Shown: positions 980 through 63,981 of the stretch, piece after piece
Layout: the number at the start of each line of letters is the position of its first letter
Numbering within the stretch: the first letter of the stretch is position 1
DNA from: Lepidodermella squamata
Lineage: Eukaryota; Animalia; Gastrotricha
DNA length: 64,000 nt
Direction of reading: 5' to 3'
NCBI GenBank assembly: GCA_047495785.1
Contig: JBLDXI010000105.1
Location: 1-64,000 of the forward strand
Program-made: the position numbers and the translations under genes
Notes under the pieces: generated by a model
What the model was told of the DNA's origin: nothing
The model's input: the letters and a program-made list of their open reading frames with translations, nothing else
The model's database searches: none

Positions 980-2785
980 CTATTTAATATTGAATGTCAA
1001 TTTAGCTAGCTCTTGTTCGTCCCTGCTTACCAAAGCAGCTCGCCGCTGAGCAACAGCCGCACCGCTTTCATCAATGGCAGATGCTGTCACAGATAACAAT
1101 TGTTCGATTGCAGTCGTTAGCTTCATGACATCAGCCGAGTTCTGACCATGCAGCTTTGAGCACATCAGCGCGAAAGCAGTGTCTATGCATTTTTGAGCTT
1201 CTGTTGCTTTCGAAGATTTTTTAGCATCGTTGTAACCTAAAATGATTTTCCCGGTCAAATCGGATGTGTTATTGAAGAGTAGATACATACCGCGGAAGAA
1301 TAGCTTACACGTGAACAGTGCCGCCTCGATTAGAGTGGGGCTCCAAGATGCAAGGGCTCTCGAGGTCTCGTCCTCCGCTTGGATAGCCGGCTGAAAGCAA
1401 TTGTAATAGGTTCGGATGAGGAATTATTAAAAAAGGCTTCTACCAAAAATTCAGGATTCATATCAATAAACAGTGGCATACAATCAGGGTGCACATAAAG
1501 CCGCCCTGGTGTCCCGGGCATAGCTGAGAAAGCGACTGTTATCAACTTCCAGTTTCGAGACAGCAATTCCCTGGCTTCAGATTTACTTAATTGGAAAGAA
1601 CCTGGAACCAATCAAAATGTCAACAATATTGAGCATTACGCATTAGGAATATTTGCAAACTGAACATTTATTCTATTAACCCTTAGCCGCCAAAGACGTG
1701 TACACGCGTTAATTCCGGAGAAAATTCACCGTGATCGGAGGATTTGGGCTATCGAACCCATTGTTGCGTCATAAATTATGATAAATCAATAGTAAGAAAC
1801 AAGCACTCCCCGAAAATCCAAATTTTCCAAGCCATTCTGACCAGGTCGAAAATAGTGAGAAAATTTTTAAATGACTTGTTAACACGTCATGAAAACGCGT
1901 TAACACGCCATAGCAACGGCGACCTAGGTAAATTTCTTCTGAAAAAGAGGTTCGGCTTTCAATCTAAGACTTTCTGCCGACTCAGAATTTGATTTTAGCC
2001 TCTTCTTGATTTTCTGGGATTTTCTGAAAGGTGCTCGAGTTAACACGTCATTGCGCCGGCGGCTAAGGGTTAATTGAGTAAAACAAAGCTTACGTTGCAC
2101 GAAGGTTGAAAATATCTGCTTTTTCCGCATCAATGCAATGATGTTACCGTACATAAGATCGTTCAAAGAGCTTCGATCGTGGAGAACATTCAAAGCCGAG
2201 TTTGTTCGCAACGGCAGCTGAACGAGGAAAGAATGAGTTAATCTCGGGGCAGGTTTCTTTAACATAACAACTCACGTGTTCTAGATCATGAAGCTGAAGT
2301 TGCGTATCAATAGCTAGCTTCAAAGTCATTTCTACGTTCGAGCCATTTATTTTTTGAGGAATGTGATCGATTGGTGCGGAATATTCGAAAGATTTATCAG
2401 CGAGGAATTTGCCTGGAATTAGCAATATTGTGTCAAATAATTATCGGGAAAACTGGATCGAGGGGAGCGATCAATTATGGGCTATAGAAAAATTAGGGTA
2501 AGACTCACATTTCATTCCAGCATTTAGACATCGCTGAAATCGGCATTTAGAGCACATAGATCGCCGATGAGCACGGCTTGTCTGAGACTTGCCAGAATTC
2601 TCGTTTTTATGACGGCATTTCAAGGTACGCCAATTTCCAGCATTCCGTCGGAAAAACTTCTGACAAGCGTGGCAGACTCGCGGCTGGTAACGCTGCCGCC
2701 TAAGAACCGTAAGGCCACATACCCTGCACTTGATAGCATCTTCTGAAGAAGCTTGGGACACTCCATTGTCCAAGCCATCCGTCAT
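980..2785 (-). CDS. Divergent nuclear receptor-like gene NR1, 6 exons, 350 aa
   Basis: Exons 2785-2509, 2412-2276, 2217-2094, 1601-1444, 1390-1291, 1236-980; all introns GT-AG; 1053 nt in frame. DBD CRVC..CHACQKFFRR..CSKCRFQRCLNAGM. Confidence 0.9.
1680..2069. mobile_element. piggyBac-type MITE in intron 3 of NR1
   Basis: TTAA at 1676-1679 and 2070-2073, 12-bp TIR CCCTTAGCCGCC. Absent from the equivalent intron of paralog NR5 (23283-23363). Confidence 0.88.
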
Positions 2786-4502
2786 TTGAAATCAATAAAC
2801 GATGTTTAAACCTTCTTGAGCTATTTTAATAATGAGCGAGTTAGCATGTGGATGAGAAATTGAATGTAATAATAGTTTCAACTATTTAGCCTCTTCCAGA
2901 CTGTCGTCTTACGTCATATACCGTTTTGTTAATTAATCCTTCCACGTCACAGTCACGTGTGCCCGAAATACCGCAGTTTTTCTACGGCTCACTTCAATGA
3001 GACCGACGCGCAGAGCTACCCCTATGTCTATGTCAGAAATGTAGAAATGTAGAAATTAGATGGATACTACTACATATTGATCGGAGCATTCCTTAAAGTT
3101 TCCCATCGTCAGCAAAAGCTAGTAGATTTAGAAAATCGGCCTTGCTAATAGGAAAGCTCACTTTTTCTAAAGATATTTTCCGCGAATTTTGTTGCAATCT
3201 TGCCCCAAGCCCTTCGTGCTCATGAGAGCTCAGAGTCAACTCTAGCCGCGACTTTATTTATTTTATATAAACTTTGAATAGCTTAGATTAAACTGGCATC
3301 TACATCTACCGCCATGTTGTGTGGAGGATGTATTCATTACTGAATTTCAATGAGAAATTAAGATAAGAAATGCAAACTCATACAAACAGGAGATTTTACG
3401 CCGAATTACCTATAATATAAATTAAACTAGGATGCGTTCTACTTTTCACAGTTAAAAACATGTAGCAGCTTCTCAATAAAGCGCGCACGCATAATAAAAA
3501 TAATATATATGTTATGCATTCGTATGAATGAAGTACTTGCATGTTTAAATTGAAATGAAGGTATAGCTTAGCGTTCTTACAAAACCAGCACTGGGCTATG
3601 CTCTGTCATGGCAGGTAAAAGCGTTTATTGTAAATCGATAGAAACCCGCGCAATGCAGTAGGCGACATCCGAAACACTTCGCATGGCTTGCGTTTAGGAT
3701 GGATGTTGTTCCCAAAAGCAAATGATCATGAAAATGGCAGTATTTCCGTAAAAGATGCTGATAATCGAAATAGGTTACGAAGGCATTTCAGCTTTTCATT
3801 AGATTAAGTATTTAGCTATAGTATTTATATAAGACAGGAATAAGTGAGAAAAATGTAACTAGCTTAGACTGCTGTGAAGAGAGCTAGGTTTATGGCAACG
3901 ACTTAACAATGAATCCAAAGGAAAAAACACATAATTACACTATATAACTAGAAACTATAACATACGCCCATTGATAAAATGGCGAGCACGTGCTTTCCAA
4001 TTTTTCACAACTCCTCTGACCTCTCGTGTTCATTATTTATTATAGGAATTCCACGAATTTTTAGAATCTAGAATTTAAACCTATTGGGTGGAATGTTTTG
4101 AAAGCAACATTCGAGCAATGTCAGAAAAATGACCTCAGGCCACCAAAAAATTCGAAAATGTTGTTCCGCTAATGTTGATTAGGTTCTCCGGTGGTAAGAA
4201 GACCCCTATCCTATTATTCGGCGTACAATGCCACAGCGCACATGGCCTGCATGGCCACACACGTTGTAACTGTAACGGCTTCGTAGAAACGACGAACGGC
4301 GCTGCTTCATTGCGGTTATAATTGCAGAGCGCTGTTGCCGTAATTTGATTGCTCAAGCATAGAAATAAGCATTTAATTTATCGATCCGTATTGACTGTGT
4401 ATGCTGACGTATATACGTAAGCACGTGTGCATGAATAAATCCGGGCTTTTCCCGCAGCGATGTTTTGTATACTGTATACTTAATTCAAAAAGCATCCCTA
4501 AA

Positions 4503-5255
4503 ATGGCCAACAATATTTGCCGCGAGATCCAAACCTGCTCGTTTTTACCAAAAATCATTGGCAACAACTTCTGCGTGGGGAGTCACAAGGAGATATGATG
4601 TTGGTCGCCCTTTACTACGACAAGGCCCTCGCGCACAGCTTGTCAATATCGGAGTGAAAGGAAGAGTGACAACGGCTTTCATCAACAGCTTCGACGACAA
4701 TTTCATCATGAGTCTCCTTCGAATCTGGTGTATTGGAAGCGGAGGCCGGCAGTGGAATGACGATTCTCCATTACGCTTGCAAAAATGACAGAAAGGAACT
4801 AGTTGCTCGTTTGATCAATCTGGAGCTAGGATCTTCATTGCTTAAAATGGTATCAAGCAGCGGCCGCAGCGCTCTGAATCACGCGATTGATGCTGGGAAT
4901 TTCCAACTTGCAAAGCAACTTTTGACTTCTCCTGAATCGGAGATAATATTCTGTTAACCCATATATATACCTTGAATTCTTCCAAGTATTACCTTGTAAT
5001 ACTAACCAAATTCTTCCAAGTACTAACCATGTATTACCTTGAATTCTTCCACGCTTCGAAAAGAAGGATGAGCTCAGGGAAATCTTACGGTGTGAATTCC
5101 AAGCGATTTTCGCAGAGATTCGAAAGCATTAGCGAGGCAAGTTATCCTCGAAAGTTTCCCCCTCGGATTCTGCACCAGATTATCTGCCATCAATCAATCA
5201 AGTCTTTCAGCTCACTTGCCAAGCGACATTTTCAATTACTTGCTTGTACAATTAT
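4503..5255 (+). pseudogene. Ankyrin repeat/SOCS-box pseudogene
   Basis: High nucleotide similarity to 25230-25946 but split over several frames. Retains GMTILHYACKNDRKELV and SALNHAIDAGNFQLAKQLL. Confidence 0.85.
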
Positions 5256-5452
5256 TCATATGATTTCAGAGTACATCAATTCTACCCAGTGAATAAATAC
5301 ATTTCCCATAGTAATTTTCAATGCACAGATTGAAGGCCTTTTCAATTCCGGTTTCAATTCCGATTTGTTTCATCAATTCTTAAGTTTAACGACGGTGAAT
5401 CTGAGCTAGAAAATCAAAGCTTCAAACAAGCACACAGCACACAATTTGCTGT

Positions 5453-7212
5453 TCACTTCACGTTGAATGTCAATTTCGCTAGTTCGGATTCTTCCACACT
5501 GGCCGTTATCAGCCGCTTCCGGGCAACAGCCGCGCCGCTTTGGTCAATGACGCGCGCTGTAATTGAGATCAAATTCTCGACAGCGGCTACTTGCCGCATG
5601 ACTTTCGCCGAGTTCGCGCCATGCAACTTCAAGCACGTCGCTAAGAACGCTGTCCTGATGCTTTCGTGAGCATTCTTCAATGCTGGGGAATTCCCAGATT
5701 CTGCGAAACCTGCAAGAAACGAATATAGAACGGAAAAGGTTGATGCTTCATGAATTCGCTAACCTCTAACAAATAGCTTGCAAGTAAACAGAGCGGCTTC
5801 GATCAGTGTTGGATTCCAAACTGCCAACGCTCTTGAAGTCTCTTCTTCGGCCTGAGCGGCTGGCTGAAAATCATAGATGAAATTAGTCGAGAACGGCATT
5901 GGCTTGAAAAAATTTACCGAAAAATCCGGATATATATCAAGGAAAACATTCAGGCAGTCGGGATGAATGTGAAGGCGCGCTGAACTGCTTGGCATAGCTG
6001 AGAATGCAATAGTTATCAGCTTCCAGTTTCGAGATAGCAAATTTCCAGCCTTGGCATCATCCAATGCGAAAGACTCTGAAACGAAAACAGTGTTTTAATA
6101 TGTCGAATTTGCCAGCCCAATTACTGAGCCATGATCAATTAAATGGTCATATAACTTTACAACAGAAACCCCGCCATGTTTTTATGGCCAAAAAGCTTTC
6201 AAGATTTAAGAGAGTGCGAATTGCGAATTTCCGCTTTTGGGATTTTTTTACATCCGGAATGCAGCGGTGGTTGCTGCAATGTGATTAGGATTAAAGGATT
6301 AAAGGATTTCACATGCGGACTTCTACTACTTCTAGGCTTACTTTGCATGAATTTCGAGAAAAGCTGATTTTTCGTCATTAAAGCGGCAATGTGACCGAAC
6401 ATGAGGTGATTCAAACAGGTGCGATCGCGTATGATTTCGGGTTCTGACATAGTTCTCATCGGCAGCTGTTCAAGAAAGCGATTCAATGAAGACAAGTATA
6501 TCAAATAAAACGTACATGCTCAAGATCGTGAAGCTGAAGTTGCGCGTCTATAGCTAGCCTCAATGTATTTTCGAGGTTCAGACCATCGAATAGCCGTGGA
6601 CTGCACTCGATAGAAGATCCGCAATCAAAAGGCTCGCCCGAATAAAATTTGCCTGTAAGTAATTGAAGCAGGAGACACAGATGCAACTCCAGAGAAGGAT
6701 TCCCTGAGCGTCATGGAGGGGAGGGGGACATTTTTGGGTAATGCTCATCCCATTTCAAGCCGAATTCCATTCTCTAGAGTTGTCTACATTTATTTCTAAA
6801 ATGTTTACTTTGAAATTTGACCAATCTCAGACAGATTGTCAAATGACTGTCAAATTAATCAAATGATTTTCACTTCAAACACCTCCATTTTTCGATTAAT
6901 CGTTTTGCGGGGCTTACTTTTCATTCCCACGGCGATGCAGCGCTGGAATCTGCATTTCGGACACACGATGCGGCGGAGGGTATAGTTTGTTGGCAACTTG
7001 TCGTCAGAATTCGATTGTGTATGATAGCATTCCAGGGATCGCCAATGTTCCGCATTCCGACGGAAAAACTTCTGGCAAGCGTGGCAGACACGCGGCTGGC
7101 AATGGCGCCGCCTTGGCACCGCAAGGCTGCATACCTTGCACGTTGGTGCATTTCGCGAAGACGCTCCATTCGTTTCATTGGCTTTGAATACCTTGTCGTG
7201 CTTAAAATCCAT
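5453..7212 (-). CDS. Divergent nuclear receptor-like gene NR2, 6 exons, 356 aa
   Basis: Exons 7212-6918, 6652-6516, 6465-6342, 6075-5918, 5863-5764, 5709-5453; GT-AG, in frame; P-box CHACQK. Confidence 0.88.
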
Positions 7213-8711: not shown

Positions 8712-10858
8712 TTAATGGTTGAACCTCAATTTTACTATTTCCAGTTCTTCGCTGGTCGCCGTAGGTCTTAGACGCCTTGCAACAGCTCCGCCGCTTCGAT
8801 TGATGACGCAGGCTGCGACTGATATTGAATTCTCGACTGCAGCCAGCTGCTGCATGACTTTTTCCGTATTTCCCCCATGAAGCTTTGAGCTCATCATTAG
8901 GAAAGCTGTCTCAATGCTTTGTTGAGCTTCCATTATTTTCCACGACAGCCTTGAATCGGTACAACCTAACGGGAGAAAATAACAGGCATTGAAGAATCAT
9001 GAATTTCCCCGAGTTTTCATAGGTTTGGTATCAGCCAGCCTATAGCCTGAAAACATGGAAAAAACCAGGCACCAGGTGCTTGGGAAATGTTGGTATTAGC
9101 AGAGAGCAGGACGCTTCCAATTTGAAAAACGTTGGGGAAAATTAGGAGAAAATCTTGCGTTTCGGAAATCGTGATATTTCCTTCTTATATCTGAGTCGCG
9201 CAGCATTTCCTAATAGTTTAACTTCGTCGTAGAGAACGCAGTGAACGAAGTTATAGATCACTACGTTCACTATGAACTTCGTTATATTTGTGTACCTCGG
9301 AAAAAGAGCCTGCAGGTGAACAGAGCGGCTTCGATCAGCGTAGGATTCCACACTGCCACTGCATTGGAGGTCGCTTCTTCCGCTCGAGCAGCTGGCTGAA
9401 ATCGAGAGAAGCAATTAATTCATAACAGATAAGTGAGAAATTTCACCAAGAAATCGGGATTCATTTCAAGGAAAACATGTATGCAGTCGGGATGCACGTA
9501 TAGACGCGACGACGTTCCGGGCAAAGCAGCATATGCGTTCATTATCAGCCCCCAGTTCTGAGACATCGAATCGATATCTTCGAAGTCATTCATTCCGAAC
9601 GACTCTGAAACGGGAACGATTTTTAATCAGAGTTGAGTCCATGTTTTGAAACTGTCACTTACGACTAGCCTTAATTCTAAGCCGTGTCAACAAAGACATG
9701 GCCTCAGCTCAGATACAATAATATCCGCTCTAAAATAATAATTTTTGGTAATTTGCTCCTGTATCTGTCTATCTCGGGAAATGACAACCCACATTTACTC
9801 AATTTGTTAAACTGGTTATAAACAAATGACGAGAAATACCCAATGAGAGAGCGTAAATGAAAATTATGCACATTGTACATTGGTAGAAGAGACAGGTTGA
9901 AAGCTTCCGTCTATTCCTAACTGTTTATCGTCGGGATATGTACCAGGAATAATTTATTAGAAAGCAAACTAAAAAGCCTTACGTTGCATGAATCTGGAGA
10001 AAATCACGTTCATCCTCATCATACCGGCTAGGGTGCCGTACATGAGACCGTTTAAGTAACTGCGATCACGCAGGGCAGCAGCATCCGCCATAGTTCTCAG
10101 TGGCAGCTGTGCAAGAAGGCATACATCGTTAGCGACGCGCCAAAACAACCACTTTGATGACTCATTCGATGGTACATTGACGAGCCGAACGTTAAGAAGG
10201 AGTACGTTTAGCTTATTTGAGCACTAATCTTACTTGTCGTAATTTGAATTTACGTTTAATGGTCGAATAACTTTCCAAAACAATCTATTAACAGTAAAGT
10301 GGTTGTTTTGGCGCGTCGCTAACGATATTGGGTTCATTGGTATGTGAAAAAGCACAAAACAATTACGTGGTCAAGGTCGTGTAGTTGAAGTTGTGCTTCT
10401 ATAGCTAGACGTAACGTCTGCTCGACTTTAGAACCGTCAACTAGTTGCAGACTGCGTTCGATTCGCGTGGGAAAATCCAAGGATCCACCTGCCAAATATT
10501 TGCCTGAATAATCATTAATAAGACGTAAGTACATGGATAGGTAACGAAAAAAGCGAATTTAAATCTGCCATATATATTTGCAGGGCTCACTTTTCATTCC
10601 AGCTATAATGCAGCGCTCGAATCTGCATTTCGAGCACATGAAGCGGCGGAGTTTAATGTTGTTAGGCCGCTCGCCGAAATCTGAGTAGTCATGGCGGCAT
10701 TCCAAGGTGTGCCAATTCTCCACTTTCCGACGGAAAAACTTCTGGCACGCTTGGCAGACGGTTGGCTGATAATGTCGCCGCTTTGCCACAGCTAGGCCAC
10801 ATACCTTACAATCCGGCGCATTCGACGAAGAAGTAACTTCCTTGTATTGACAAGACAT
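8712..10858 (-). CDS. Divergent nuclear receptor-like gene NR3, 6 exons, 346 aa
   Basis: Exons 10858-10591, 10503-10367, 10106-9983, 9604-9447, 9395-9296, 8965-8712; P-box CQACQK. Confidence 0.88.
10125..10326. mobile_element. MITE-like inverted-repeat insertion in intron 2 of NR3
   Basis: 31-bp perfect inverted repeat ATCGTTAGCGACGCGCCAAAACAACCACTTT. This intron is ~260 nt versus ~55 nt in paralogs. No clear TSD. Confidence 0.8.
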
Positions 10859-17445: not shown

Positions 17446-17878
17446 AATAACACCTGAAAATCGGGGGGAAAGGGGACAAGAAGGGTCGGGGATGAGGGGG
17501 ACTGGGGGCGGTAATCCCAAATGATGACTGGGACAGAAAACGCCGAAAATTAGGGTGATATAATTAAAAATAGGGTGGAATAAGTAGTATTTACTAGTTG
17601 GCCTAGTGCCAGTATGTTATTTTTTATTGAAAATATTTTACAGAGAAGGTTGAAGAAAAAAGAGAGAAAAAGGCTCGTGCTTTTCAGAACGAAATTTGCG
17701 CAATTCTTGACTCAAAGGTGATTGTCCTAACTAGTAGCAGCAGGCCACGTTGAAAGCAATCAAATCTTGGAAAAGGCAAGCAATTTTGAAAGCAATTTTG
17801 AGATGGAATCATGACAATAAAATAATACATAACACACAAATTTATTGAATTAAAGTCTTCATTTGTTGATAGGCGACA

Positions 17879-21040: not shown

Positions 21041-21049
21041 ATTAAGATG

Positions 21050-45766: not shown

Positions 45767-46527
45767 TTAAATCAGCATTTAGCGAAACAAGAACATTTTG
45801 AAGATTTCCCAAATCCTCCTAAAACTCTCCTCGGGTTGAAAAACTGCAAAGCATAAAAGCATATGGCAAACTATTTGGGAAGCGTTGTATAGCGGCACGT
45901 GGTGAGTTGAGAATGGTTCGAAATAATAAGGGTTAGCGGACTCAAATATGAGACAAGAGTTTCGACTTGTTTTGAAAAAATTGAAGGTCAGGCCCAACAC
46001 TTCGGGCAGTACTACGGTATATTTGCTTTGGAAATGGAAAGCAGTTTCAAAGACGCGCTATTTTTGAATTTTCAAACCTCCCAGATTGGCGAAAATCCTG
46101 ATGTGTGATTTATCGTTGTCAGTGATTTGATTTGATTGATTTGGTTCGTGAAAGTGGGACATGCGATCGCTTCACGCTTCACCAAATGCCACGAGCAGTA
46201 CGTGTCGAGCGGCTCGGCAGCTGAGAGGACTGTCCGCTTCGCCTACTTCTACGATGTGATGACCTTGCTGGCGGACGTAGTGATGTACAAAAACAAGTGA
46301 GTTATTCTATTTATTTGTCGGTAATCAATGATCTCGCAGTTTTCATATATTTGTATTTTGAAAATTCAAGAACCTGGTTGATCCACGCAGCAAGGTAACT
46401 GCTTCAGGACCCTCCGAGGTTCCGAGACCCTATCAGAGTAACCGTGGTCAGAGATTCTCCACCCTGGACAACCCGGCAGCCAGTATTACTATCACCAAGA
46501 TGGTTATAGTAGTAACTTAAAGGAATA

Positions 46528-48205: not shown

Positions 48206-48512
48206 TACTTCTGAATTCAGATAGAGCATCCCCTGACTTCGGACCATTTTTTTCTCGTGTATTATAACGGGTTAGCATAGTGATTCGTTCATGAAATAGC
48301 ACGGTATTCACGTATTTTCGAATAAAAAAGGCGTGAGTGTTCATTCATGATTTTTTTCCGAGACACGTGCCGCAATCGAAAAATTTGGCCGGATTGGCCT
48401 CAAATTTACATTGATTTGTGCGTCATTTATCGCTGGAAACATCACATTATAATGCTGCATGTAATTGCATACATTTTATCTCTTAAATTAGTGCTTCTTA
48501 GAGGTAATTGAA

Positions 48513-50475
48513 ATGTCATGCGAAGTCACTTCAACGCTAGATTCGCCCGAAAAGGCAGAACGAGTACTTGATCCAAAGAACTGTAACGTTTGCGGCCTTG
48601 AAGTGGCGAAACATGGCGCTTATCGAGCCAAAGTCTGCTCTGCATGTCACAAATTCTTCCGACGCAATGTCGAGCATTGGCAGTCGCTGCAATGCTACCA
48701 CAAGCACGGCGCTTTTTCTGGCGAGCGGCAAATCAGCCGTGCCATGCGGCGTAGCATGTGCGCGAAATGCCGTTTTGAGAGGTGCATCCAAGCAGGAATG
48801 AGAAGTAAGTTCGAAATGTATCATTGCTGTCCCAATTTCCCACGCTAAGCATTGAAAAGCGCACTAAGCACCCAGAAAATCATCAACGATGTCCATTCAG
48901 TATTTTAGTATCCAATAATTGTTAGACAAATGCTGAGCATTTCAAAAGTTGAAGCTGATTATAGCCTGAAGTATGCTAGTAGCCTAATGCTTTTAAATGC
49001 TTTTATTTTCATATAAAATATGAAACCAAAAACTAAAATGTACAATTTCCCCATTTTTTCATTATGAAAATAGTCCCAGAGCCTCCTCAAAATGATCAAA
49101 AAACTTCTAACTTCATACCTTGAATTTTGGCTACAAACCGGGTTTTCCACACGAATGATGCGCGAGATTCTTTGCTGCCTCGCTTGAATAATGAACAATA
49201 AAAGAACCCCGATCACAAGTAACTTGTTTCATAATTCAAGAAGCTATCTATAGTTGGCAAGTATTATTTTGCAAATGTGCGCGATAACGGTCAAAAAAGA
49301 AATGCGGCCGCAAGGCACAGCACTCACGGCACCATGCATGATAGTGGAGCTAAAGGACTATGCCACCAGTGGTTTTTTAATATAGTCATCCATAGCTAAG
49401 AAAATCAAGATACTTTCAATTTTGTATACTTTTTAGGTAAATATCTGGTGAGTGATTCTTTGATACTTGCGCCAAAAGTTGACACCGGTTTGAAAACTGA
49501 TGAAATGTCTCTCGTCGAGGAAACTTTGAAGAAGTCGATCGACATTCAGCTGCAGCTTCATGGCCTCGAACATGTGAATTCGTACCCTAAAACTGTTCAA
49601 TGCTTACTCTATGATATTTGTTATATGTTAGCTGCCCTTGAAACGCCAGTACAGCAAAGAGGAACTGCCGAGGATAGACATTATGAAATTGATGTTCGGT
49701 AACATTGCCGAGACCATGAAACTTAGCATCCCTTTCGCGAACCACATAAGAGGTGAGTGATGCAACTAAAATTTGCTACTGGTATAACAGCAGCATATTC
49801 TTGAAGAATCTTTCAGATTAAGCCAGCCCGAAGTTGAGAGACTGATTTTGCGAAACTGGAAACACGTTGTATCCGCATATTCAGCTTTACCTGGCACAGA
49901 CGGATACATGTTAACTAGTCCTCAACTGCTACCAATTTTTCTTGCGGCAAACCCTGAATTTCAGGCGAGTTAAGTCGGAAATCCAAACTACGCCAGTCAA
50001 TTTCGTCGAGTTTTTGGTTTTTGTACATCTCTAATTTTCTTGCATTCTGCAGGCTTTAAGCACTCCTGCAGCAAACACAGCGAATGCTATCAGGTTGTGG
50101 AATCCAACCCTTATCGAGGCTGCTTTGTTTACCTGCCGGCTTTTCTTCCACGGTTTGTTCGGTATTTCTCAGTGAATCAATAGAACTTGGTTTACTTTTG
50201 TTTTCAACCATCAATGTATGGTTTCAGGCTCCTCCGCAACTGACGAGTCGCCGGGCGTGCGGGCAGCGCGGAAATGTGTCGATTCAGCTTTTCATATTGT
50301 TTCTCAAAAGCTCCACGGCTCTGAAACATCGCCGGTTCTTCACCGCGTTTCGGTGGTTGAAAACCTCATCGCTGTAGGGTCAAGCCTTCTTGAAGAGTGC
50401 TTGATCGCTGTGTTGCGCCGAAACGAAAAATCATTCGACCGCAAAGAGCTTCCGCTTGGAATTTCATCGACTTGA
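48513..50475 (+). CDS. Divergent nuclear receptor-like gene NR11, 6 exons, GC-AG intron 4
   Basis: Exons 48513-48804, 49437-49573, 49632-49752, 49807-49964, 50053-50152, 50228-50475. Donor after exon 4 is CAG|GCGAGT. Confidence 0.85.
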
Positions 50476-51302: not shown

Positions 51303-54300
51303 ATGTCATTTGAAGAACAAGCAGCAAATGATGGCGCAAAGATAAAGCGGTCTTCAGGGTCAGAAAGGCCCGAAGAGAAGGCTCCCTGCCAAGTTTGTGG
51401 TCTCGCAGTTCGAAAACGTCGCGGATATCAGCCGCGGGTGTGCTCCGCCTGCCGCAAGTTTTTCAGGCGCCATGCTGAAAGTTGGCAATCGCTGAACTGC
51501 AACCACGAGCTAACGCATGCTGATGGACTTCAAGACAGCAGAGCCATGCGACGGTTCATGTGCGCAAAATGCCGATTTGAAAGATGCATTCGGGCTGGCA
51601 TGAGAAGTAAGTGAAATGGGAACCGTGCAGATTACTACTCTCAGCCTTGTATCTCTATCGAATCACATATTCCGAATCAAAACTAATCATTCATTTTGAA
51701 TTTGGTTCGTTACCATCATTTTTGTTCTTCATTTTTGAATTAGAAGACCAAAGATGAGAGGCTCCTTTAACATCAGTGTTAGAAAGATGTATAGATTTCG
51801 GAATTTCAACTTTGAAAATTTGCAGAAAATTCAATTTGATAAATTCTTGATCGCCCTTTTGAGGAATTTGCTTTTCGCTGTTGGCTACGGGGCAGACTTT
51901 TCGGTCTGCTACTTTTTCTATGCCTAGACCTAGACCATACTTTCTGCTAGAAACTAAGACCAACACCAAGACCAAAATCAAAAGTAAGTCTTTCGTTCAA
52001 GACCAAAGACCATAGACCGATAATTTCAATTACGCATGACTTCATTGTTGATTTTTCGCTATTTCTTCTATTTTGAACATTTCTACTGCAAAAGCCAGCA
52101 ACCAGCAATCAATTATTTTAAAAGCTAATTATTGAAACTAAATTTCTTATTTATTGCTGTAATTTCTCTAGTTTCGCGTCTTAGAAAGCATAAACAATTT
52201 TAACTGTACCCACAACACAGGATTAAGGCTTGAGTCCTCAAGAGCGAACGGAGCACAAAGCTGATACCACCTGTTGACAGAACAAACAAATGCCGCTAGG
52301 CTGAGGAGAGTCTTGTGAACTCGGCACCCTAGTCAAATGCTTTCACCGCTGTTGACTTGAAACTCAAAACTTGAAATTTGGGCTCCAGTGACTAGGCAGA
52401 TTAAAATAATTGTTATACTTAATTTGATGCGATTTGTTATTTTTTCGGCTATGCATATGTAAATTAGAAAGCAGTTGGGGCTTTGAGTCACTTATTGATG
52501 CGGCGTTTAGATGAAATCGCCAAGAAGTAGCCAACTCACTGCGCAAGCATTATTTCGAGTATCGAGCTTGGAGAAAACTGTGGTCAAGCCAACCACAGGA
52601 GGACCCAATGGCCAAGGGTCGGGGACGGGCAAGCCAGCCCAGGGTTCGAGCCAGCGAGCAGCGGGACAGCAGTTGAGCAAAAGTCAGCGGAAGAACAGGC
52701 GAAGGCGGGTGCGTAATGCGGCTAAGAAGGCTGCCGAGACTGGTAAGAAGGCACCAGTAGTTGAGCAGGTCGAAGCCGAGGCCGAGTCTGAGTCGGAATT
52801 CGAGGCAGAGTCGTCGATGGATGTGTCGAGGATTAGCAATAGCGGGTCAACGAGCAGTCGCTTGGGTGCCAGTCAGGACGAGCGACGCCAGGATGGTCCC
52901 TTGCGTGCCAGTCAGGGCAAGGGCCGTTCGGGCAGCAAGTTGAACAGTAATTCAAAGGAGCTTTTGAACGATCTGTGGGGTCGCGCGGCAGTCGCAGCGG
53001 CTAGTGTTATTTTTTCGGACAAGTCGGAGAAAGACTTTATCAATCAAGTCAGTATAATTCTGGCTGGAATGGCCGTGATGAAATATCAGGGTCAGAGAGA
53101 TATGACGGAATTTAGCTTCGACTTGGCATTTGTGAAAGCCCAGCTGTATTTTGAAGAATTCCGAAAATGCCAAAAGCAGTAAAACTTGGACTGTGGAACG
53201 GCTACGGAATTGCCAGTAGGCCGTACGAGTTTCAGTTAGCGGTAGATGAGTCAGAGTGCGAGGTGTTCTTCGGGGTAGAGTCGTGGTTCAAGGCAGCCAC
53301 GCAGATAGAGTTGCCTGGTTTCAAGTTGTTCACCTTCAACCAGGTGGTCGACGGAATCGAGGCGGGCAGACGGGGTTTAGCAGCCTGGGTGAAAGAGGGC
53401 CTTGAGGTCGTCCGACAGCGGAACGGCACAGGCGAGAACGTAGAGTGGATGGCGTTAGATGTAGCATGCTCGGGTCAGGAGACGGTGACTTTTGTTACGG
53501 TCTACGTCCCTAACGGCGAGCGGGCCTTCGATGCAACATTCCTACGAGAACTGGCGTTGCACGGGCCGGTGGTGGTTTGTGGTGATTTCAACTGTCACCA
53601 TAGGCGACTGTGGGCAGGAGATAAGCGGGACAACGGGGCAGGTAGAGAAGTGCTCAGGCTTGTAGAGGATGGCTCGTTAGAGCTCATTAGCGCTGGGGTA
53701 CCGACGCACAAGCATGGCGGGCAGCTAGATCTATGGCTAGCTTCGCCGGACTTGGCCGGTCAGTTCGGTGTACCCGATGTGGGCGGGTGCTACGGCAGTG
53801 ACCATAACCTGGTTGCCGTCGATTTCGAACTTAGCGCTAGTCGTTCTCCCTATCCCAAGGTGAGGTTCGACTATAATAAGATGAACGAAGGATTCTATCA
53901 GGCAGTTGTGACAGATAAGCTGCTGAAGATTCCCTTGCCTGCAATAGCGAGTGATGAGGAGGTACGTAGGTTCGATGGCGAAATCAATAAAGCCATGCAG
54001 GAGGCACGTGATAGATCAGTGCCAACGGTGTTAGCAAAACAGCTGAAAAAGTACAGGTCGACACCGCAGATGGCTGCGTTGATCGAGCGTAGACATAAAG
54101 CGTTGCGGCAGTACCGTTCTACGGGAAACCCTGTGTTTCAGGCCAGGGCGGACGCGTTCTATGCTCGTTTCAAAGAGTTAGCAGCCTTAGCTGAAGAGCG
54201 CAAGCACACGCGTAACCTTCAGCGGATGGAAAAGCGTAGAAGGGTAGATTCGGGGGCGTTCTTCCGGGCTTTTCGTGAGATCACAGCGGAGAGTGGGTCG

Positions 54301-57300
54301 GCACCAGGACCAGCGATCCGCACCCTGACCAACGAGGCAGGTGAGCTGGTTGTCGGTGACGCGGCTAGAGCCGAGTTGTTCCGCGATCATTACAAGTCTC
54401 AGTTGAACCCTAAGCCGAAGGTCGAGAATGATCCAGAGATCAAGGCACATCATGCCGAGGTCGAAAGGATTGTTCAAGAGGATCGGGAGTTGTTTAACCC
54501 GATTGAGACCAAGAAGATTGACGTGAAAGTCATGATCTCAAGGGCTGAGATGAGAAGCGCGGTTCGACGTTTGAAGCTCAAGGCTCCAGGCCGTGATGAG
54601 ATTTCGAACGTGCTCATCAAGAAGGGTGGGCCGGTACTTTGGGCGTATCTGCGCCATTTGTACAATTATAGCCTAGCTTGTGGGTTCGTGCCGGAGAGGT
54701 GGAAGTTGGCCGTTATCGTCCCGCTTCCGAGGTCAGGGAAGGACTTGTCGAAACCGTCAGGTTACCGTCCCGTGTCGCTTCTTCCGACAGTTGCGAAGCT
54801 GCTAGAGCTCATTTTGGCTACTAGGCTAGCTCTTCTTTTCAGGTCAAATAATATAATTCCTGATCATCAGTCTGGTTTTCAGATACGCCGATCGACGAGC
54901 GATCAAACTTTCCGATTCTCGCAGGCCAGAGCGATGGCGCGGCGTCGTCGAACGAAGATGGTGATGATCGCGGCCCTGCTGGATTTCGAAGGCGCCTTCA
55001 ACGCGGTGTGTCACAACTCGCTGCGCGTGAAGCTTCGAGACTGCGTCGCTGTTCCAAGATCAATGGTGCGCTGGGTCTCGTCCTTCCTGACCGGCCGGAC
55101 CTTTACGGTCAAGGTGAGTAGCTCCTTCAGTGAGACAGCAGATATCGGCTCAGGGGTTCCGCAAGGATCCTCATTGAGCCCTATACTCTTTGCCTTTTTC
55201 ACAGCGGACTTGATGCCGGACAACAACAGCGACGAGCGCAAGGCCTTCACCGCTTCGTTCGCTGACGACGTGCTCTTGTTCGCTGTGGCTTGCTACACTG
55301 GGATGGCGAAGCAGCGGGTGCAGACGGCGCTGACGCGGGTCTCTCGATGGAGCAGACTCTGGAAGTTGCCGCTTAGTCCGCCGAAGTGCCAAATGCTGCG
55401 GTTTGGCGGACAAGTCAACGACGACGACCGGCTGTTTGTGGGTGACGAGAAGCTGCCGAAGGTCGCTGCGGCGAAGTACCTTGGTGTCACGTTTGACGCG
55501 ATCGGGTCGTGGAAGCCGCATTTCGACAACATCGAGGCGGATGCGCGATCTCGACTCGGGGCTCTTCGCCGGGTCTGCTTTCCGGGTTCGCCGCTTGGCT
55601 TTGCCTCGCGGAAGTTGCTGTATCTGACGATCGTGAGACCGGTTCTTGAGTACTCCTGTGTGGCCTGGTTGGATGCGTCGTATGCGCAGAAAAAGCGCTT
55701 GATCGTGCTGCAGAACAACTGTTTGCGGGCGATCATCGGCTCGTCTATTCTGGACAAGCAGGACGAATCTGAGCTCTACCGCCTAACGGGAGTGGAGCCG
55801 CTGGAACGCCGCTGGCTGAAACTAGCAGTCGGCTTTGCTGATCGGGCTATGCAGTTCGTGCCACCAGTCGCCGCCATGATCGCCGACCATCGTCGAGAGT
55901 GGGGCGTGGCTGGTACCCCGCTCGGACAGTTCATCAATTTTGTGGGCCGTTAGGCCTTGTCTATCTATGTATTTATATGAGCATCAGTCAGTTTAATACA
56001 GAAAATAAAACAACAAAAACCCATACACAATACACATATATACACAAAATAAAATAAAAAACAAAACCACATTAGCCCTGTGCCACGACTGTAAATGAGT
56101 GTGTGCGTTGTCATATATATTTCTTGTTTTTTATAAAAAGATGAAACGCATAACATATGCTGTAATTGTTAAGATTTGCTGCATTTGATATCATTGCTAC
56201 TACTGTCGGTCAGAAGTTGTTAAACAAGAGACCGTTTTTCCAATAAAACAAGACCGTTGGAAGAAAAAAAAAATCGAGCTTGGAGCTTGAGGCTAAATAA
56301 TAGCCCATCAGCCAATTAAACGATAAAAGAAAAGGAAAAGAAAACTATCTTCCTGATGCTGACAGAAAATGTCGCGAGGTAAAACTGGGAATACTGAATT
56401 TAGATCTGAATGCTGAGCCTTTGAAACTTTTCAAATTTAATGTTTTCAGTGATATAAAAGTGAGGAAGAATTTTAGGGACATTCATGAGAGTACAAGAGC
56501 TACAAACCTAAATTTTTCCATCTTCAGGCAAATTTCTAGCAGATGAAAACCCTGATTCAGCGATAATTCCGATCGGCCAGTTCCCAAGCGATCGCAACAC
56601 TTCAGCGATCGAGACGACATTGAAGCAAGCGATTGACGCGCAGCTGCAACTTCACGGTCTAGAACACGTATGTCTTGATAATTGGTTGCAGGTGCCTTAA
56701 TGAGCTAATATACATATGCTATAGCTACCGATGAAATGCACCGATAGGTTAAGCGATTATCGAATTGATGAATTTCTTAAGAAACTAATGATTGGCAACG
56801 TTGTGGGCATCATGAATCTCGGTGGCTTGTTTGCGATTCACGTCAAGGGTGAGTGAGCTGCCAAAGAAAAAGAAACTGAACGATAAAAATCCACTCTCTT
56901 TATTTTTTATAAGAATCCTTCAACTTGTGCGAAATGGAGGTCCAGCATCTAATATCTCGTAACTGGAAGGGCATTACTGTCGCCTACTCGGCGCAGCCGG
57001 GCACAGGCGGCAGCTTGCTAGCTAATGCCTGCATTTTGCCGAGTTTACTGGAGCATAGCCCAGAGCTTCTGGTACGCTTTCATGTTTCATGTTCGAATTT
57101 TGATATTACGTGAATTATCAAACCATTCCTGTTAAAACATAGGCAGAGTTCTCATTTCTTAATTTTGCGTTTTTCAGCCTGCAAACGCATCAGAAATCCA
57201 TGTATCTAACGCTGTGAGCCAATGGAATCCATCGTTTATCGAAACGGCGTTGTTCACGTGTCGTTTGTTTTTCCAAGGTAGGCATTCATTGGCTAGTGCT

Positions 57301-57617
57301 CTATAATCGATCGAGATCTCACACGCTGTTAACCAATAGGGTGTAATGAATTCAATTCATCATCTCCCGGTTTGCTATCAGCTCAATCAAATATCGAAAG
57401 GGCCTTCACTGCTATACGTTGGAAGATGCGAGGTTGTGAATCGCCGCGCGTGTTGCAGCAAGTGTCGATCGTAGAGCATCTGATCGGCATCGCTACTCGT
57501 ATCAACGATGAGTGCGGGGCTGCGATTGTGAGGCGGCAAGCAGCGAATTGCACCAGTGAAGAAATAACCCTTGGCGCTAAGTTTATTCTCGGAATCACTG
57601 CTGTTTGTCAAAGCTAA
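51303..57617 (+). CDS. Divergent nuclear receptor-like gene NR12, 6 exons, LINE in intron 1
   Basis: Exons 51303-51606, 56528-56667, 56725-56848, 56914-57071, 57178-57277, 57340-57617; in frame; P-box CSACRK. Confidence 0.85.
51920..52020. repeat. AGACC-motif cluster, probably a MITE remnant
   Basis: Repeated TAGACC/AAGACCAA units in intron 1 of NR12. Confidence 0.45.
52574..53182 (+). CDS. LINE-B ORF1 (partial): basic and acidic low-complexity protein without zinc knuckles
   Basis: Frame open from the element edge. KSQRKNRRRRVR and EAESESEFEAE tracts. Overlaps ORF2 by 16 nt. The ATG at 52511 in the ORF track lies outside the TSD. Confidence 0.7.
   Translation, partial: KTVVKPTTGGPNGQGSGTGKPAQGSSQRAAGQQLSKSQRKNRRRRVRNAAKKAAETGKKAPVVEQVEAEAESESEFEAESSMDVSRISNSGSTSSRLGASQDERRQDGPLRASQGKGRSGSKLNSNSKELLNDLWGRAAVAAASVIFSDKSEKDFINQVSIILAGMAVMKYQGQRDMTEFSFDLAFVKAQLYFEEFRKCQKQ
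53167..55953 (+). CDS. LINE-B ORF2: AP endonuclease and reverse transcriptase, 928 aa
   Basis: Motifs GDFN, SDH, KAPGRD, YRPVSLL, QSGF, LDFEGAFN, GVPQGSSLSP, FADD, KYLG. Confidence 0.97.
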   Translation: MPKAVKLGLWNGYGIASRPYEFQLAVDESECEVFFGVESWFKAATQIELPGFKLFTFNQVVDGIEAGRRGLAAWVKEGLEVVRQRNGTGENVEWMALDVACSGQETVTFVTVYVPNGERAFDATFLRELALHGPVVVCGDFNCHHRRLWAGDKRDNGAGREVLRLVEDGSLELISAGVPTHKHGGQLDLWLASPDLAGQFGVPDVGGCYGSDHNLVAVDFELSASRSPYPKVRFDYNKMNEGFYQAVVTDKLLKIPLPAIASDEEVRRFDGEINKAMQEARDRSVPTVLAKQLKKYRSTPQMAALIERRHKALRQYRSTGNPVFQARADAFYARFKELAALAEERKHTRNLQRMEKRRRVDSGAFFRAFREITAESGSAPGPAIRTLTNEAGELVVGDAARAELFRDHYKSQLNPKPKVENDPEIKAHHAEVERIVQEDRELFNPIETKKIDVKVMISRAEMRSAVRRLKLKAPGRDEISNVLIKKGGPVLWAYLRHLYNYSLACGFVPERWKLAVIVPLPRSGKDLSKPSGYRPVSLLPTVAKLLELILATRLALLFRSNNIIPDHQSGFQIRRSTSDQTFRFSQARAMARRRRTKMVMIAALLDFEGAFNAVCHNSLRVKLRDCVAVPRSMVRWVSSFLTGRTFTVKVSSSFSETADIGSGVPQGSSLSPILFAFFTADLMPDNNSDERKAFTASFADDVLLFAVACYTGMAKQRVQTALTRVSRWSRLWKLPLSPPKCQMLRFGGQVNDDDRLFVGDEKLPKVAAAKYLGVTFDAIGSWKPHFDNIEADARSRLGALRRVCFPGSPLGFASRKLLYLTIVRPVLEYSCVAWLDASYAQKKRLIVLQNNCLRAIIGSSILDKQDESELYRLTGVEPLERRWLKLAVGFADRAMQFVPPVAAMIADHRREWGVAGTPLGQFINFVGR

Positions 57618-57671
57618 ACGGGAAAAATAAAGGAGAACGAGACGCGGTGTGAGAATTATAGATTATAGATA

Positions 57672-59348: not shown

Positions 59349-61654
59349 ATGCCGAAGAATAGTCTGAAATATAGCGACAAAATGGTAGTATCAAAATCTG
59401 TTGAAGAAAAGAAGCCTCACCGATGCAACGTCTGCGGCCTTCCAGTGGCAAAGCGACGCGATTACCAGCCGCGAGTTTGCTCGGCGTGTCACAAGTTTTT
59501 CAGGCGAAACGCCGAGCACTGGCAGTCGCTACGATGCCTCCACCGGCACGACAACGCCAGCGGCTTGCAGACCAACTCGGCAATGCGGCGCAGCATGTGC
59601 ACGAAGTGCCGCTTCGAGAGATGCATCAACTCCGGAATGAGGAGTAAGTTCAATTCTTCACATCATCGCAATGCTGGCTTGGGCTATAATGAACTGTTGC
59701 TGGAATAATTTCGACGTCGCGCTCACTTCCAAGTTCTAAAAATGCATTTTTTTAAACATTCCTGGCCATTCGATTTATTTGCGTTGCTAATAACCGATCA
59801 GATTAATTCTCGTTTTTTAAAACAATTTTTAAGGCAGATGGAATGCGTTAGCATCAATGCTTTATCAAATATTGAAAATAGCAATTTTTACAGGTAAATT
59901 TATGGCGGCAAAGCGCAATGCCGAAACGGCGAACATCAACCTGGAAGTTGCAACAACTGATTCTCCGCTAATAGAAGGCACGCTGCGGAAAGCAATCGAG
60001 ATGCAGTTACAGCTGCACGGTCTAGAACATGTTAGTTCTGCGCTTGATATGAGCTATGATTTATTCAAACCCATGTTCTTTAGCTGCCGATGAGATTTCA
60101 GTACAGCAAGAAGCAAATGAGCAACAGTGACTTCACCTCGCAGCTTCTGATCGGCAATATTTCTGGAATTTTGCAGCTGGGTTGGGTTTTTGCCAGCCGC
60201 ATTCAAGGTAAGTACCAACTGGACTAAAACAGGTAACCGTAGATGAAGTACATTTCACCTCAGCAAACGAAGTAGATTTCAATTTCAAAGCATCTAATAT
60301 AATTATAATGAAACCATTCTAAGTAGTTCTATATCTTACAAGTGGAAGAAGTGGGATCTGCGATGCCGAAGGTCGATGAGGTTTTGGGAAGAAGGGCGAA
60401 GGGGTTACGTTTCTGTATTTTCGGTCTCGGGTTTATGAGAATAAAATGGTAACCTTTTTTTTTATTTTTTTCTCTGGCTAGACCTCTCGTACACCCGTAA
60501 TTCACAAGCTGCATGATAGCATCTTAGGAAGATACATGTTCAGCCTACCCACCGTCAACAGTTTTGTTTTCAGTTTCTCATCACTTATTGTATTGCATCA
60601 TATTTATGTTCTGTTCTGTTCGCAGATTGCTTTCATTTGAAAGAATCAACAGTTCGAACTCTTCTAGCTCGCGGCTGGAAGAATATTTGTGCGGCGTACT
60701 CTGTTCTGCCCGGAAACAACTGCATCATGCTAGCGAATCCTGATATTTTACCTATGTTTCTCGATCACTACCCCGACCTTCGCGTAAGTTCATTCGATTA
60801 AGATATCATTCGATGGGCAGTATCAAGAATTATTTTTAGCCAGTAAGAGCTGCGGCAGAAAACTTGGCGGCTGCTATGAGCAAATGGAACCCAAAGCTCG
60901 TCGAGGCCGCTCTGTTCACTTGTCGGCTGCTTTTCCGAGGTAAATTCATGCTACGAATTCTCAAGCAATTGGAAAAAAATATCACGCCGCAATAACCCAA
61001 ATGAAAAATTCGCTAAACGAAGTAGAGCTATACAGGGCTTGGATTTTCTGTGGATTTTCTTGATTTAGCCCCTCTTTCCCCTGAAAGTCTCACACTGAAG
61101 ATGTGTAAGTAAGCTTTGGTCTGTACTAATGCGGACAAATTCACACACCAGAATTTCGAAGATTTCCTATTTCCAGATTTCCTATATCACAGATTTCCAA
61201 GCACTACCCACAAATAGTACCCAAGTTTACATAATTTACGCACCAAAGCTGTCCTTGAAAAAAAACTGGTTGAATCCTGATTCTTTGAAGGATTCATCAT
61301 AAGAATTGTCGGGAGTAACTAAAAAATTGCACGAAGTCAGTCAATTTTGTGTTCGAAATACCTCAGATTTTGTATCTTTCGTTTCAAGGCGCCAATGCAA
61401 TGGATGATTCACCTGAATTACTCGCAGCACGAGAATCCGTTGAGAAAGCTTTCGTTGCAATATGCCACAAGCTTCATGGCTCGAAATCGCAACAGGTCAT
61501 TCACCAGGCTCACGTGGTCGAGAACCTCATCGGCATAAGCACTCACGTGCTCGACGAATGTTCATCGTCAATGCTGAGGAGTCGGGCCAAATCCAGCGGA
61601 CGAGCTGAGCTGTCCCTCGGCGTCAAATTCACACTTGGCATTATTGCTATTTGA
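59349..61654 (+). CDS. Divergent nuclear receptor-like gene NR13, 6 exons
   Basis: Exons 59349-59643, 59894-60030, 60084-60207, 60626-60783, 60840-60939, 61389-61654. Confidence 0.9.
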
Positions 61655-63139
61655 TTTAACGAAACGCTAGCAAGACCTCGATGACCAAATCATTCATACA
61701 GTTCGTTAGGCAGAGCTTCCTCTAAGCTCATAAACTGTTATTACTATTCCATCAGCTTTCTAAGTTAGTCAATTCAATTTATTATGTTAACTTTTCCCCA
61801 GCTCATGTTATATGTCGCATTCTGCTGGTTTTGCTACTGGCGTAGTCTCTCGTTGCACGTCGGAGGCAAATCTGAAATAAAATCTTGCTCCACGTGAAGA
61901 GCGCACCAAATTGCTCGCTTTTTTGACATAAAAACGGTTAGAGTGTTGATTTTCACTTGTCTCGCTTGTCACTGTCCGATTTGTACTTATTATGGTGAAG
62001 AATCGCGCGTTGTTTAGTCGCGGAGATCGATGAAGCGGAAATCATAGGCTTAGTAGTAATGAGTTGGTACATCATTATCCTCCTTTTTACCCCGGAAAAG
62101 TTTCAAATTTTACTATTGACCGATACAAAATATAAGCCCCGACAATGTCTGAAAAAAGTATACACGTGAGAGTTAGCCGCCAGAGAGAAACTTCGCGTAT
62201 CAATTTCGCGAGAAATCGCTATATTGCATTTTTCTAAAGCAAAAGCACTTTACATTTAAAAGCAGGTGTTAATTACAGGAAATCACAGCATATGCTTCGT
62301 TAAATTAGCCTTCAGATTTTTGAATTTTGAATCGCTGTCTGCATATTGAAGATTAAAATCACAGTCGAGCACTTTGCAAACGAAAAACACATTATTTCGT
62401 GACGGGCCAGTCAAAGTCAGTCTGTCCGTCAAAGTTGTCGTGTCAAAGTTTATTTTCCGAAATACCTAGGTTAATATTTCGTTGAGAAATACATTGCGAA
62501 AGGATTTCTGAATTTGAGAATACTACTTTCCTGCCTGGAACGCGAAAACTTGAAATATTCATTGAAACTCGGAATAGATCCTTAGAACTGAGGTGAGCAG
62601 GCACAGATCTGAAACTCGCCAAAATTATTCGAGTTCGAACAATGTGTTCACTTTGAGCCTGAGTACGAAAGAATTTGTCTGCGTACTTGATGAGTAAAAT
62701 GCATCCCGCCTCCGATCCCATAAGTGGCACACGTGAGTTGCCGCGATCGATAATATGCACTTCGCAACAGCGCGAAATTACCATGCAGAAGTTTAGTCTT
62801 GGTCCCGTCAGCTTTCATCATACACGGCAAGAATGAATTCGAGCTGGCTTGATTTCGCATCACGTTTGCGGCGAAGCATAAATAGGTCCATTTGACGGCA
62901 CGGCCAGGTTACAATTTTTCTACGATTACGGTTGAATGTTGCCTCGCACGAATATAGATATTCCTTAGAAATACCTAGCTAACTCAATTCATCTTCTTAC
63001 AGTTTAGGTCTTTTTGCTCGAAAAATGTCATACAAAGCAATGGGAGATTTACATTCTGATTTCATTTTTTAAATAGCTTTAAGAATAATCTACCCTGTGT
63101 ACCCTGGTTTCTACCTGAAATCTCGAATCAGAGCACACT

Positions 63140-63981
63140 ATGTCGACGTCGATTTTACCAGGATCTTCAAATGCTGCTAAAGCGACGAAAAAATACCTCA
63201 ACTGCAAAGCATGCGACGTTCCGGTGCCGAGGCGGCAGTCGCATCAACCCCGAGTTTGCTCGGCCTGTCACAAGTTCTTCAGACGAAATGCTGAGATTTG
63301 GCGGTCACTTGAATGCAATCATAAATACGAACCAAGGGCTGCTGCAGAACTGCAGGACGATCGGGCTAAGCGGCGATCTATGTGCACGAAATGCCGTTTT
63401 GATAGATGCCTGCAGGCAGGCATGCGAAGTAAGTTATGAACGTGGCGCAACAGTTCGGATAGAGCTTAACCCGAAAGCAGAACTCGAATACGACTTTGCA
63501 GTACGAAGGAAGTTCTGCTTTCGGATTATTAAACAGCGATGCCTATTTAATTAGAAGACACGAGCTTTGCTGCTCTGGAAATTTAGGATCATCCTAATAT
63601 TCGCTAATATTCCATCAATCAATATATGAAATCAGCATCAATCGGTTGACGAATCGATAAATGCCCTGACCTATCCTTTGCTCCTTTGCTGTTCTTGAGC
63701 TCAAACTGCTCATAACAAAATTGTTAGTAATAATTTATGGGCCCCATTGATATAGGCTGAAGAGATTTCATTGGGGATGAAAAACACGGTTTTTGTGGGG
63801 TGTACGAAACATTATGGCAACCCACTGTATTTTTATAATACCGGTTTCTATAATAGGTAGATTTTTTGTTGGCTCTGCAGTGGAAATAGAAAAATTCCCG
63901 TCAACTATGGAGTATTCGCTAGTTGAGGGAACTGTGAGAAAATCAATTGATGCGCAGCTACAGCTTCATGGCTTCGAACAT
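63140..63981 (+). CDS. Divergent nuclear receptor-like gene NR14, partial (runs off the window)
   Basis: Exon 1 63140-63428 (DBD); exon 2 63857-63981 ending QLQLHGFEH|GT. Confidence 0.85.

Follow-up and report, generated by a model that had tools for sequence, protein, structure and literature searches.

A tandem array of divergent nuclear receptor genes with a probable Cys3His second finger in the gastrotrich Lepidodermella squamata

The DNA-binding domain (DBD) of nuclear receptors is among the most invariant of animal folds. Canonical DBDs have eight zinc-binding cysteines, C-x2-C-x13-C-x2-C and C-x5-C-x9-C-x2-C, and a P-box in which Glu and Lys contact bases and read AGGTCA. The supplementary nuclear hormone receptors of nematodes represent an expansion derived from HNF4. 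Analyzed here is a 64,000 nt stretch from the gastrotrich Lepidodermella squamata (contig JBLDXI010000105.1, positions 1–64,000, assembly GCA_047495785.1), termed the window, which has 14 loci (G1–G14) with nuclear receptor-type DBDs. GC content is 43.3%, against a published value of 43%. With a probability of about 0.8, this array represents a tandem, lineage-restricted and fast-evolving nuclear receptor subfamily with turnover by local duplication and loss.

The nematode supplementary receptors are similar to the window genes in that they form a large, clustered and divergent expansion with altered P-boxes and with hard-to-detect ligand-binding domains (LBDs). The P-boxes differ, however, and the window genes have a probable Cys3His finger. 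A mismatch to the nematode CRACAA P-box was part of the original prediction, which was made from the window sequence alone, and it is borne out: the window P-boxes are C[HQ]ACQK or CSAC[HR]K, and CRACAA-type DBDs are not grouped with them in the best tree. The extent of precedent was understated in that prediction, as large or divergent expansions have also been reported from spider mites (PMC10435515) and from Macrostomum and amphioxus (PMC8363021). The HR96/HR96-LBD genes of spider mites and the divergent receptors of Macrostomum share lineage-specific duplication, tandem copies and atypical P-boxes with the window (PMC10435515, PMC8363021), but the window genes have no HR96 P-box and retain the DBD, and the mite genes are linked to detoxification. 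In parasitic flatworms, HR96b has a CHC2 second finger with His in place of the second Cys and represents a single HR96 orthogroup (PMC8363021). Finger 2 has a His and three Cys in both cases, but the window His is at Cys5+2 and not at the Cys6 position, 18–19 residues follow it, and the window genes are multi-copy and without the HR96 P-box. Receptors with two DBDs (NR7/2DBD-NRA) have CEACKK as first P-box, and no CHC2 motif was found in them (PMC10497141). They have two tandem DBDs, in contrast to the single DBD per gene in all window models.

No paper on gastrotrich nuclear receptors was found in the literature, and nuclear receptors are not mentioned in the genome paper (PMC11660948). Literature on the P-box motifs of the family yielded nothing relevant, and no paper was found under the phrase Cys-to-His receptor fingers. 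The expansion, the atypical P-boxes and the His-bearing second finger each have precedent; the combination is apparently undescribed.

A six-frame scan of the window reveals exactly 14 first zinc fingers of nuclear receptor type. Those of G1–G5 are on the minus strand (positions 2728, 7140, 10810, 19393 and 24006) and those of G6–G14 on the plus strand (27991, 30903, 37379, 42350, 45653, 48582, 51387, 59424 and 63203). An exon search with G7 as seed found a complete ordered set of six exons at 12 of the 14 loci; the predicted 14 DBD loci are confirmed, and 12 of them have the full six-exon plan. The predicted intron phases 1,0,1,0,1 and the lengths of exons 4 and 5 (158 and 100 nt) hold in every one of the 12 models. 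Eleven models are open (338–369 aa), including G12 despite a long interspersed nuclear element (LINE) in its intron 1. Predicted introns in the 12 models are GT..AG, except for intron 4 of G11, which has a GC donor (position 49964), and more than half are 46–65 nt in length. The spliced models were built from the window sequence and compared by local scripts, and single LBD exons were used for the database searches.

The DNA-binding domain

A search with the zf-C4 hidden Markov model (PF00105), as proposed with the original prediction, is positive. The three loci tested pass the cut-off with E-values of 1e-8 to 2e-10, and there are PDB sequence matches as well. Only receptor DBDs are found among the best 50 structure matches of the G4 DBD model (predicted local distance difference test score, pLDDT, of 81).

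The window DBDs do not have the canonical eight-cysteine pattern. Finger 1 is C-x2-C-x14-C-x2-C family-wide, with a 14-residue loop that is without the usual HYG. All 13 complete DBDs have a finger 2 of the form C-x-H-x18/19-C-x2-C, in which Cys6 is absent. The His and seven Cys do not vary among these 13 sequences, with both CAT and CAC present as His codons. The loss of Cys6 together with the invariant C-x-H is the most distinctive feature of the family, and it was omitted from the original prediction. The 150 best database matches contain 222 DBDs, of which only one, in P0002, is without Cys6; it also has C-x-H and is in another clade. In zinc site II of the BRCA1 RING, Cys61 and Cys64 are the ligands that accompany a Cys and a His. 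These two, Cys39 and His41, are in C-x-H spacing and bind one zinc (PMC6406614). Given the invariance of the His and of the seven Cys, and the C-x-H precedents in P0002 and BRCA1 RING site II, a Cys3His zinc site is the best and most likely reading of the finger 2 sequence. P0002 (876 aa, UniParc) has five DBDs, at least one of which is independently without Cys6 and with C-x-H; P0001 has six DBDs.

The recognition helix is C[HQ]ACQKFFRR in G1–G5 and CSAC[HR]KFFRR in G6–G14. It aligns to CESCKGFFKR of NR5A2, and this alignment shows that the base-reading Glu and Lys are replaced. Each intact gene would encode a transcription factor of 340–370 aa with a short N-terminus, the DBD, a short hinge and a domain with an LBD fold, the latter assigned via a relative. 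Finger 1 would hold its zinc by a Cys4 site, and finger 2 by Cys5, the His at Cys5+2, Cys7 and Cys8. The D-box appears to be replaced by a longer, variable loop, which would alter dimer spacing. Binding to a half-site other than AGGTCA is probable, since the recognition helix no longer carries the AGGTCA-reading Glu and Lys. The sequences C[HQ]ACQK (G1–G5) and CSAC[HR]K (G6–G14) may represent two specificity classes.

Ligand-binding domain, relatives and divergence of the copies

The fold test for the whole LBD was run on P0036, a natural intronless relative, through which the fold of the window LBDs is assigned. A profile of the window LBDs matches P0036 with an E-value of 8e-13 over 215 columns, and in the ESM Atlas the C-terminal domain of P0036 reaches a score of 0.95 against Hormone_recep clusters. 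Receptor LBDs make up all of the best 50 Foldseek rows for the P0036 model, with E-values of 0.01 or worse, and the top 19 rows in VIA (best Z 9.4, rmsd 4.4, 173 aligned). When the family is combined with its relatives, the profile aligns to fetched canonical LBDs with an hhalign E-value of 1e-4 over 174 colinear columns. Given the profile match to P0036, its ESM score, the fold matches and the family-profile alignment, the window genes are, as modeled, complete receptors with a DBD and an LBD-fold domain, in agreement with their original assignment as nuclear receptors. The whole P0036 protein has no match to PF00104, and an ESM Atlas search with the exon 5–6 read-through open reading frame (ORF) of G1 gave no usable match. 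Among fetched proteins, a 2DBD receptor is the best LBD match outside the family, with a weak E-value of 0.03.

A search of 1.84 billion proteins with the DBD profile found no Cys3His family members; a sister group was found instead. It consists of P0008, P0016, P0020, P0036 and P0163, from the ENA metagenome assemblies ERZ27332993, ERZ27333047 and ERZ23486764. These relatives, with P-box CEACQK, form one clade with the window genes (support 98/99). Both groups have the 14-residue finger 1 loop with V-x-R-R-x-x-Y-x-P, the AC[QH]KFFRR helix, the GM-x-SKF tail and a homologous LBD; the phase-0 intron after helix 1 is likewise shared, by relatives on L002 and L006. The relatives, too, are present in several copies, two of them in tandem on L003. 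Unlike the window genes, they retain the P-box Glu and the full eight cysteines, have fewer introns or none, and their LBDs are only about 20–30% identical to those of the window. The sequences suggest that finger 1 and the P-box changed first, and that Cys6 and the P-box Glu were lost afterwards. L003:4898–8083, L002:10001–11218 and L007:385–1671 carry a multi-copy CEACQK family of an intron-poor animal, with the tandem pair and intronless members. The PITPNM gene next to the relatives gave no lead to this animal, its best matches being only about 34%.

A DBD/LBD phylogeny against NR0–NR6 was also proposed earlier. In the DBD trees built, this clade is distinct and has no firm place among NR0–NR7: groupings with HR96-type, 2DBD-first or other divergent DBDs do not appear in the best tree and, when forced, are not rejected. 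HR96-type DBDs are a separate, starred clade in the best tree, and a forced grouping with the window family has an approximately unbiased test value (p-AU) of 0.078, from 67 columns. The first DBD of the 2DBD receptors, whose CEACKK is one change from CEACQK, is not grouped with the window family (forced grouping, p-AU 0.41). CRACAA-type DBDs are outside the starred clade of the window family, and a forced grouping of that family with a mixed set of divergent DBDs has a p-AU of 0.28. With the G13 DBD exon as query, word-based homologue searching, which is limited by length, gave no candidates.

Protein identities among the paralogues are 35–87%, and pairwise dN/dS is 0.15–0.41 where dS is measurable. 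Codon models give omega values of 0.22 (DBD) and 0.26 (LBD), and about 20% of DBD sites fit an omega near 1. The birth-and-death repertoire of the original prediction, specific to one lineage, is in keeping with this lineage-restricted clade under purifying selection. An LBD site class with omega >1 is not supported (M8 vs M8a, lnL -6424.5 vs -6425.0) in a low-power test that employed our own M0/M7/M8a/M8 code, a fixed tree and 12 sequences. The DBD proteins of G8, G9 and G13 are identical despite 3–6 synonymous changes per pair, but the LBDs are 82–88% identical, i.e., there are 0 DBD versus 28–39 LBD amino acid changes per pair (Fisher p 0.03–0.10). Faster change of the LBD than of the DBD is not significant in G1, G4 and G5. 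The constant DBDs and diverged LBDs of G8, G9 and G13 suggest several regulatory inputs onto shared target genes, which several LBDs would feed. The DBD exons of these three genes (37339–37639, 42310–42610 and 59406–59654) are about 95% identical in DNA and the rest of the genes 72–86%. This may be due to strong constraint or to (partial) gene conversion.

G6–G14 form one clade in DBD trees. As tree topology follows strand, a single inversion followed by local duplication on either side is the probable history.

Loci and other elements of the window

On the minus strand, G1 (980–2785) is open and encodes 350 aa in exons 2785–2509, 2412–2276, 2217–2094, 1601–1444, 1390–1291 and 1236–980. G2 (5453–7212) is open with 356 aa and has exons 7212–6918, 6652–6516, 6465–6342, 6075–5918, 5863–5764 and 5709–5453. 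G3 (8712–10858; 346 aa, open) consists of exons 10858–10591, 10503–10367, 10106–9983, 9604–9447, 9395–9296 and 8965–8712. G4 (17879–19450), also open, encodes 351 aa in exons 19450–19174, 19028–18892, 18833–18707, 18497–18340, 18288–18189 and 18135–17879. The P-box is CHACQK in G1, G2 and G4, and CQACQK in G3.

G5 (22661–24054) has all six exons (24054–23787, 23685–23549, 23487–23364, 23282–23125, 23070–22971 and 22917–22661) and a TGA at 23907–23905 inside the DBD. The public run with window DNA represents heterozygous DNA. Over about 98 sites, a short contig in it shows 5 differences from G5 and 8 from G4, and it carries a sense codon where G5 has the TGA. The G5 stop is probably a heterozygous null allele, because the density of differences equals that of other allelic bubbles; alternatively, the second form may be a paralogue elsewhere in the genome. 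This same form changes the P-box at site 23938 from CHACQK to CHACHK, the residue of the plus-strand clade.

By self-BLAST, a receptor-plus-ankyrin unit is present three times on the left side of the window. The ankyrin-repeat ORF co-duplicated with G5 is open (25230–25946, plus strand); the copies associated with G1 and G4 are frameshifted (about 4305–5266) and a fragment (20750–21025), respectively. A high-copy interspersed repeat is at 26400–27700, at the junction of the minus and plus blocks, with a summed contig depth of up to about 40x background.

On the plus strand, G6 (27961–29497) is open and encodes 338 aa in exons 27961–28210, 28498–28619, 28670–28790, 28845–29002, 29079–29178 and 29232–29497. 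Behind it, at 29661–29785, is a decayed second copy of exon 6 (nhmmer E 1e-9). G7 (30852–32370; open, 349 aa) has exons 30852–31125, 31395–31519, 31571–31694, 31745–31902, 31956–32055 and 32102–32370. G8 (37274–39339) is open, with 369 aa from the ATG at 37274 (359 aa if started at 37304); its first exon runs to 37598 and is followed by 37815–37951, 38005–38128, 38468–38625, 38681–38780 and 39074–39339. G9 (42284–44900), which has the same DBD protein as G8 and G13, is open with 355 aa in exons 42284–42569, 42946–43082, 43136–43259, 43994–44151, 44207–44306 and 44638–44900. G10 (45617–45766) is a truncated relic with the first zinc finger and recognition helix, a stop ahead of finger 2, and no downstream exons found. 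G11 (48513–50475; open, 351 aa) has exons 48513–48804, 49437–49573, 49632–49752, 49807–49964 (the GC donor), 50053–50152 and 50228–50475. G13 (59349–61654) is open and encodes 359 aa in exons 59349–59643, 59894–60030, 60084–60207, 60626–60783, 60840–60939 and 61389–61654. Exons 1 and 2 of G14 (63140–63428 and about 63857–63981) are within the window, and the gene (63140–63981 here) runs beyond its edge. The P-box is CSACHK in G6, G7, G8, G11, G13 and G14. Predicted AAG acceptors precede exon 6 in G8 (39074), G9 (44638) and G13 (61389).

G12 (51303–57617, plus strand; P-box CSACRK) is open with 367 aa. Exon 1 (51303–51606) is followed by a 4921 nt intron that contains the LINE, then by exons 56528–56667, 56725–56848, 56914–57071, 57178–57277 and 57340–57617. 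Of the mixed locus states in the original prediction, the intact, nonsense (G5) and truncated (G10) ones are present, but the orphan exons are not; a single gene, split by the LINE, accounts for both the 51303 DBD exon and those at 56528–57617. This element (52511–55953, plus strand) has ORF1 at 52511–53182 and ORF2, with endonuclease and reverse transcriptase, at 53167–55953. It is in the same orientation as G12 and, with an AATAAA near 56004, could cut G12 transcripts short. Between G3 and G4 is another LINE (13037–17520, minus strand), with ORF1 at 17520–15934 and ORF2, also with endonuclease and reverse transcriptase, at 15937–13037. The two LINEs are mutually unrelated; both are probably recent, as ORF1 and ORF2 are fully open in each. 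No target-site duplications were clearly found for them. Pairs of inverted repeats, of a kind common in non-autonomous DNA transposons, are at 36072–36772, 39433–39623, 40375–41646 and 46521–48212, the last being downstream of G10. Rfam has no match in the window.

Interpretation and significance

Several points weigh against a receptor subfamily as described above. The gene models are predictions from DNA, the one public run that matches the window is a DNA run, and a single search of public runs listed no RNA run. Zinc ligation and DNA binding are deduced from sequence, and the AlphaFold models carry no metal. The LBD exons of the window, searched as single-exon pieces, have no significant Pfam or PDB match; the proposed Hormone_recep (PF00104) search stayed below the cut-off, with a best E-value of 0.034 (14 bits vs a cut-off of 23.5). 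A profile of the window LBDs alone is at noise level against canonical LBDs (hhalign 19.5 vs a shuffled maximum of 18.4). The P0036 model has a mean pLDDT of 58, with a weak first third and good quality only from residue 110, and its Foldseek E-values are those given above. An origin of the array in uncollapsed haplotypes or amplification chimeras is close to inconceivable, even though the source genome was amplified by multiple displacement amplification and is 3% heterozygous (PMC11660948) and the array has an inverted block. The closest pair of paralogues is 87% identical with a dS of 0.22, so the array is not one of uncollapsed haplotypes. The longest self-matches in the window (self-BLAST) are 66–95% identical and represent diverged segmental units with no mirror copies, and within bubbles of the DNA run the difference between true alleles is only about 5%. 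This artefact, which the original prediction had itself raised, is rejected on the divergence values and the self-match pattern. It is also improbable that finger 2 is without zinc and that the proteins are LBD-only modulators with a degenerate DBD that has no DNA binding of its own. Cys6 is lost, the loop from His to Cys7 is variable, with the DBD sites of omega near 1 noted above, base-reading residues are changed, and families of receptors without a DBD are known (PMC10435515). Yet no variation is seen in Cys5, Cys7 and Cys8, in the His or in the FFRR helix, and conservation is higher in the DBD than in the LBD, as seen both in the DBD omega of 0.22 and in the identical DBD proteins of G8, G9 and G13.

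What the LBDs do is divided, with about equal weight, between compound sensing and a ligand-free scaffold, each of which is rather doubtful. By analogy with the HR96-like expansion of spider mites that controls detoxification genes (PMC10435515), the LBDs could bind different environmental compounds, as in HR96 or PXR, and switch on detoxification genes; the faster divergence of the LBDs in G8, G9 and G13 would fit such a xenobiotic- or diet-sensing repertoire, and the tree test does not reject the forced placement with HR96-type DBDs. However, the window genes do not have the HR96 P-box CESCKA, the HR96-type DBDs make up a clade of their own, no LBD class with omega >1 was obtained, the faster LBD change does not extend to G1, G4 and G5 at significance, and there are no CYP, UGT or GST genes in the window. 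The sensing of xenobiotics or metabolites that was originally suggested thus has no support in any test. The LBDs could equally be scaffolds for dimerisation or co-repressors, without a working pocket or activation function 2 (AF-2), in orphan regulators or dimer partners with a role in development or cell identity. On inspection of the alignment by eye, the charge-clamp Lys of helix 3 and the canonical hydrophobic-Glu motif of helix 12 are not conserved, and helices 1 and 8 are the best conserved parts of the LBD. The top Foldseek rows are the ligand-independent Nurr1 and Nur77, a ranking that means little at such E-values. Against a single scaffold role, a dozen selected copies with LBDs 34–88% identical would be a better fit to diversified inputs.

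A fuller form of the lineage-restricted subfamily reading is tentative and somewhat short of an even chance. The subfamily would be restricted to gastrotrichs. The finger 1 and P-box change of a CEACQK ancestor would have been followed by replacement of the D-box with a RING-like Cys-x-His...Cys-x2-Cys site and by loss of the AGGTCA-reading residues, giving a new DNA element and a new dimer geometry. The array would then be one of several, on a nematode scale but independent.

The array is no demonstration of a new mechanism. With it, the few lineages that have massive receptor expansions are joined by a probably unstudied phylum. About 12 selected paralogues with a probable Cys3His finger 2 and a rewritten helix, together with a sister group that has eight cysteines, represent a natural stepwise series for the rewiring of zinc geometry, dimer spacing and half-site choice.

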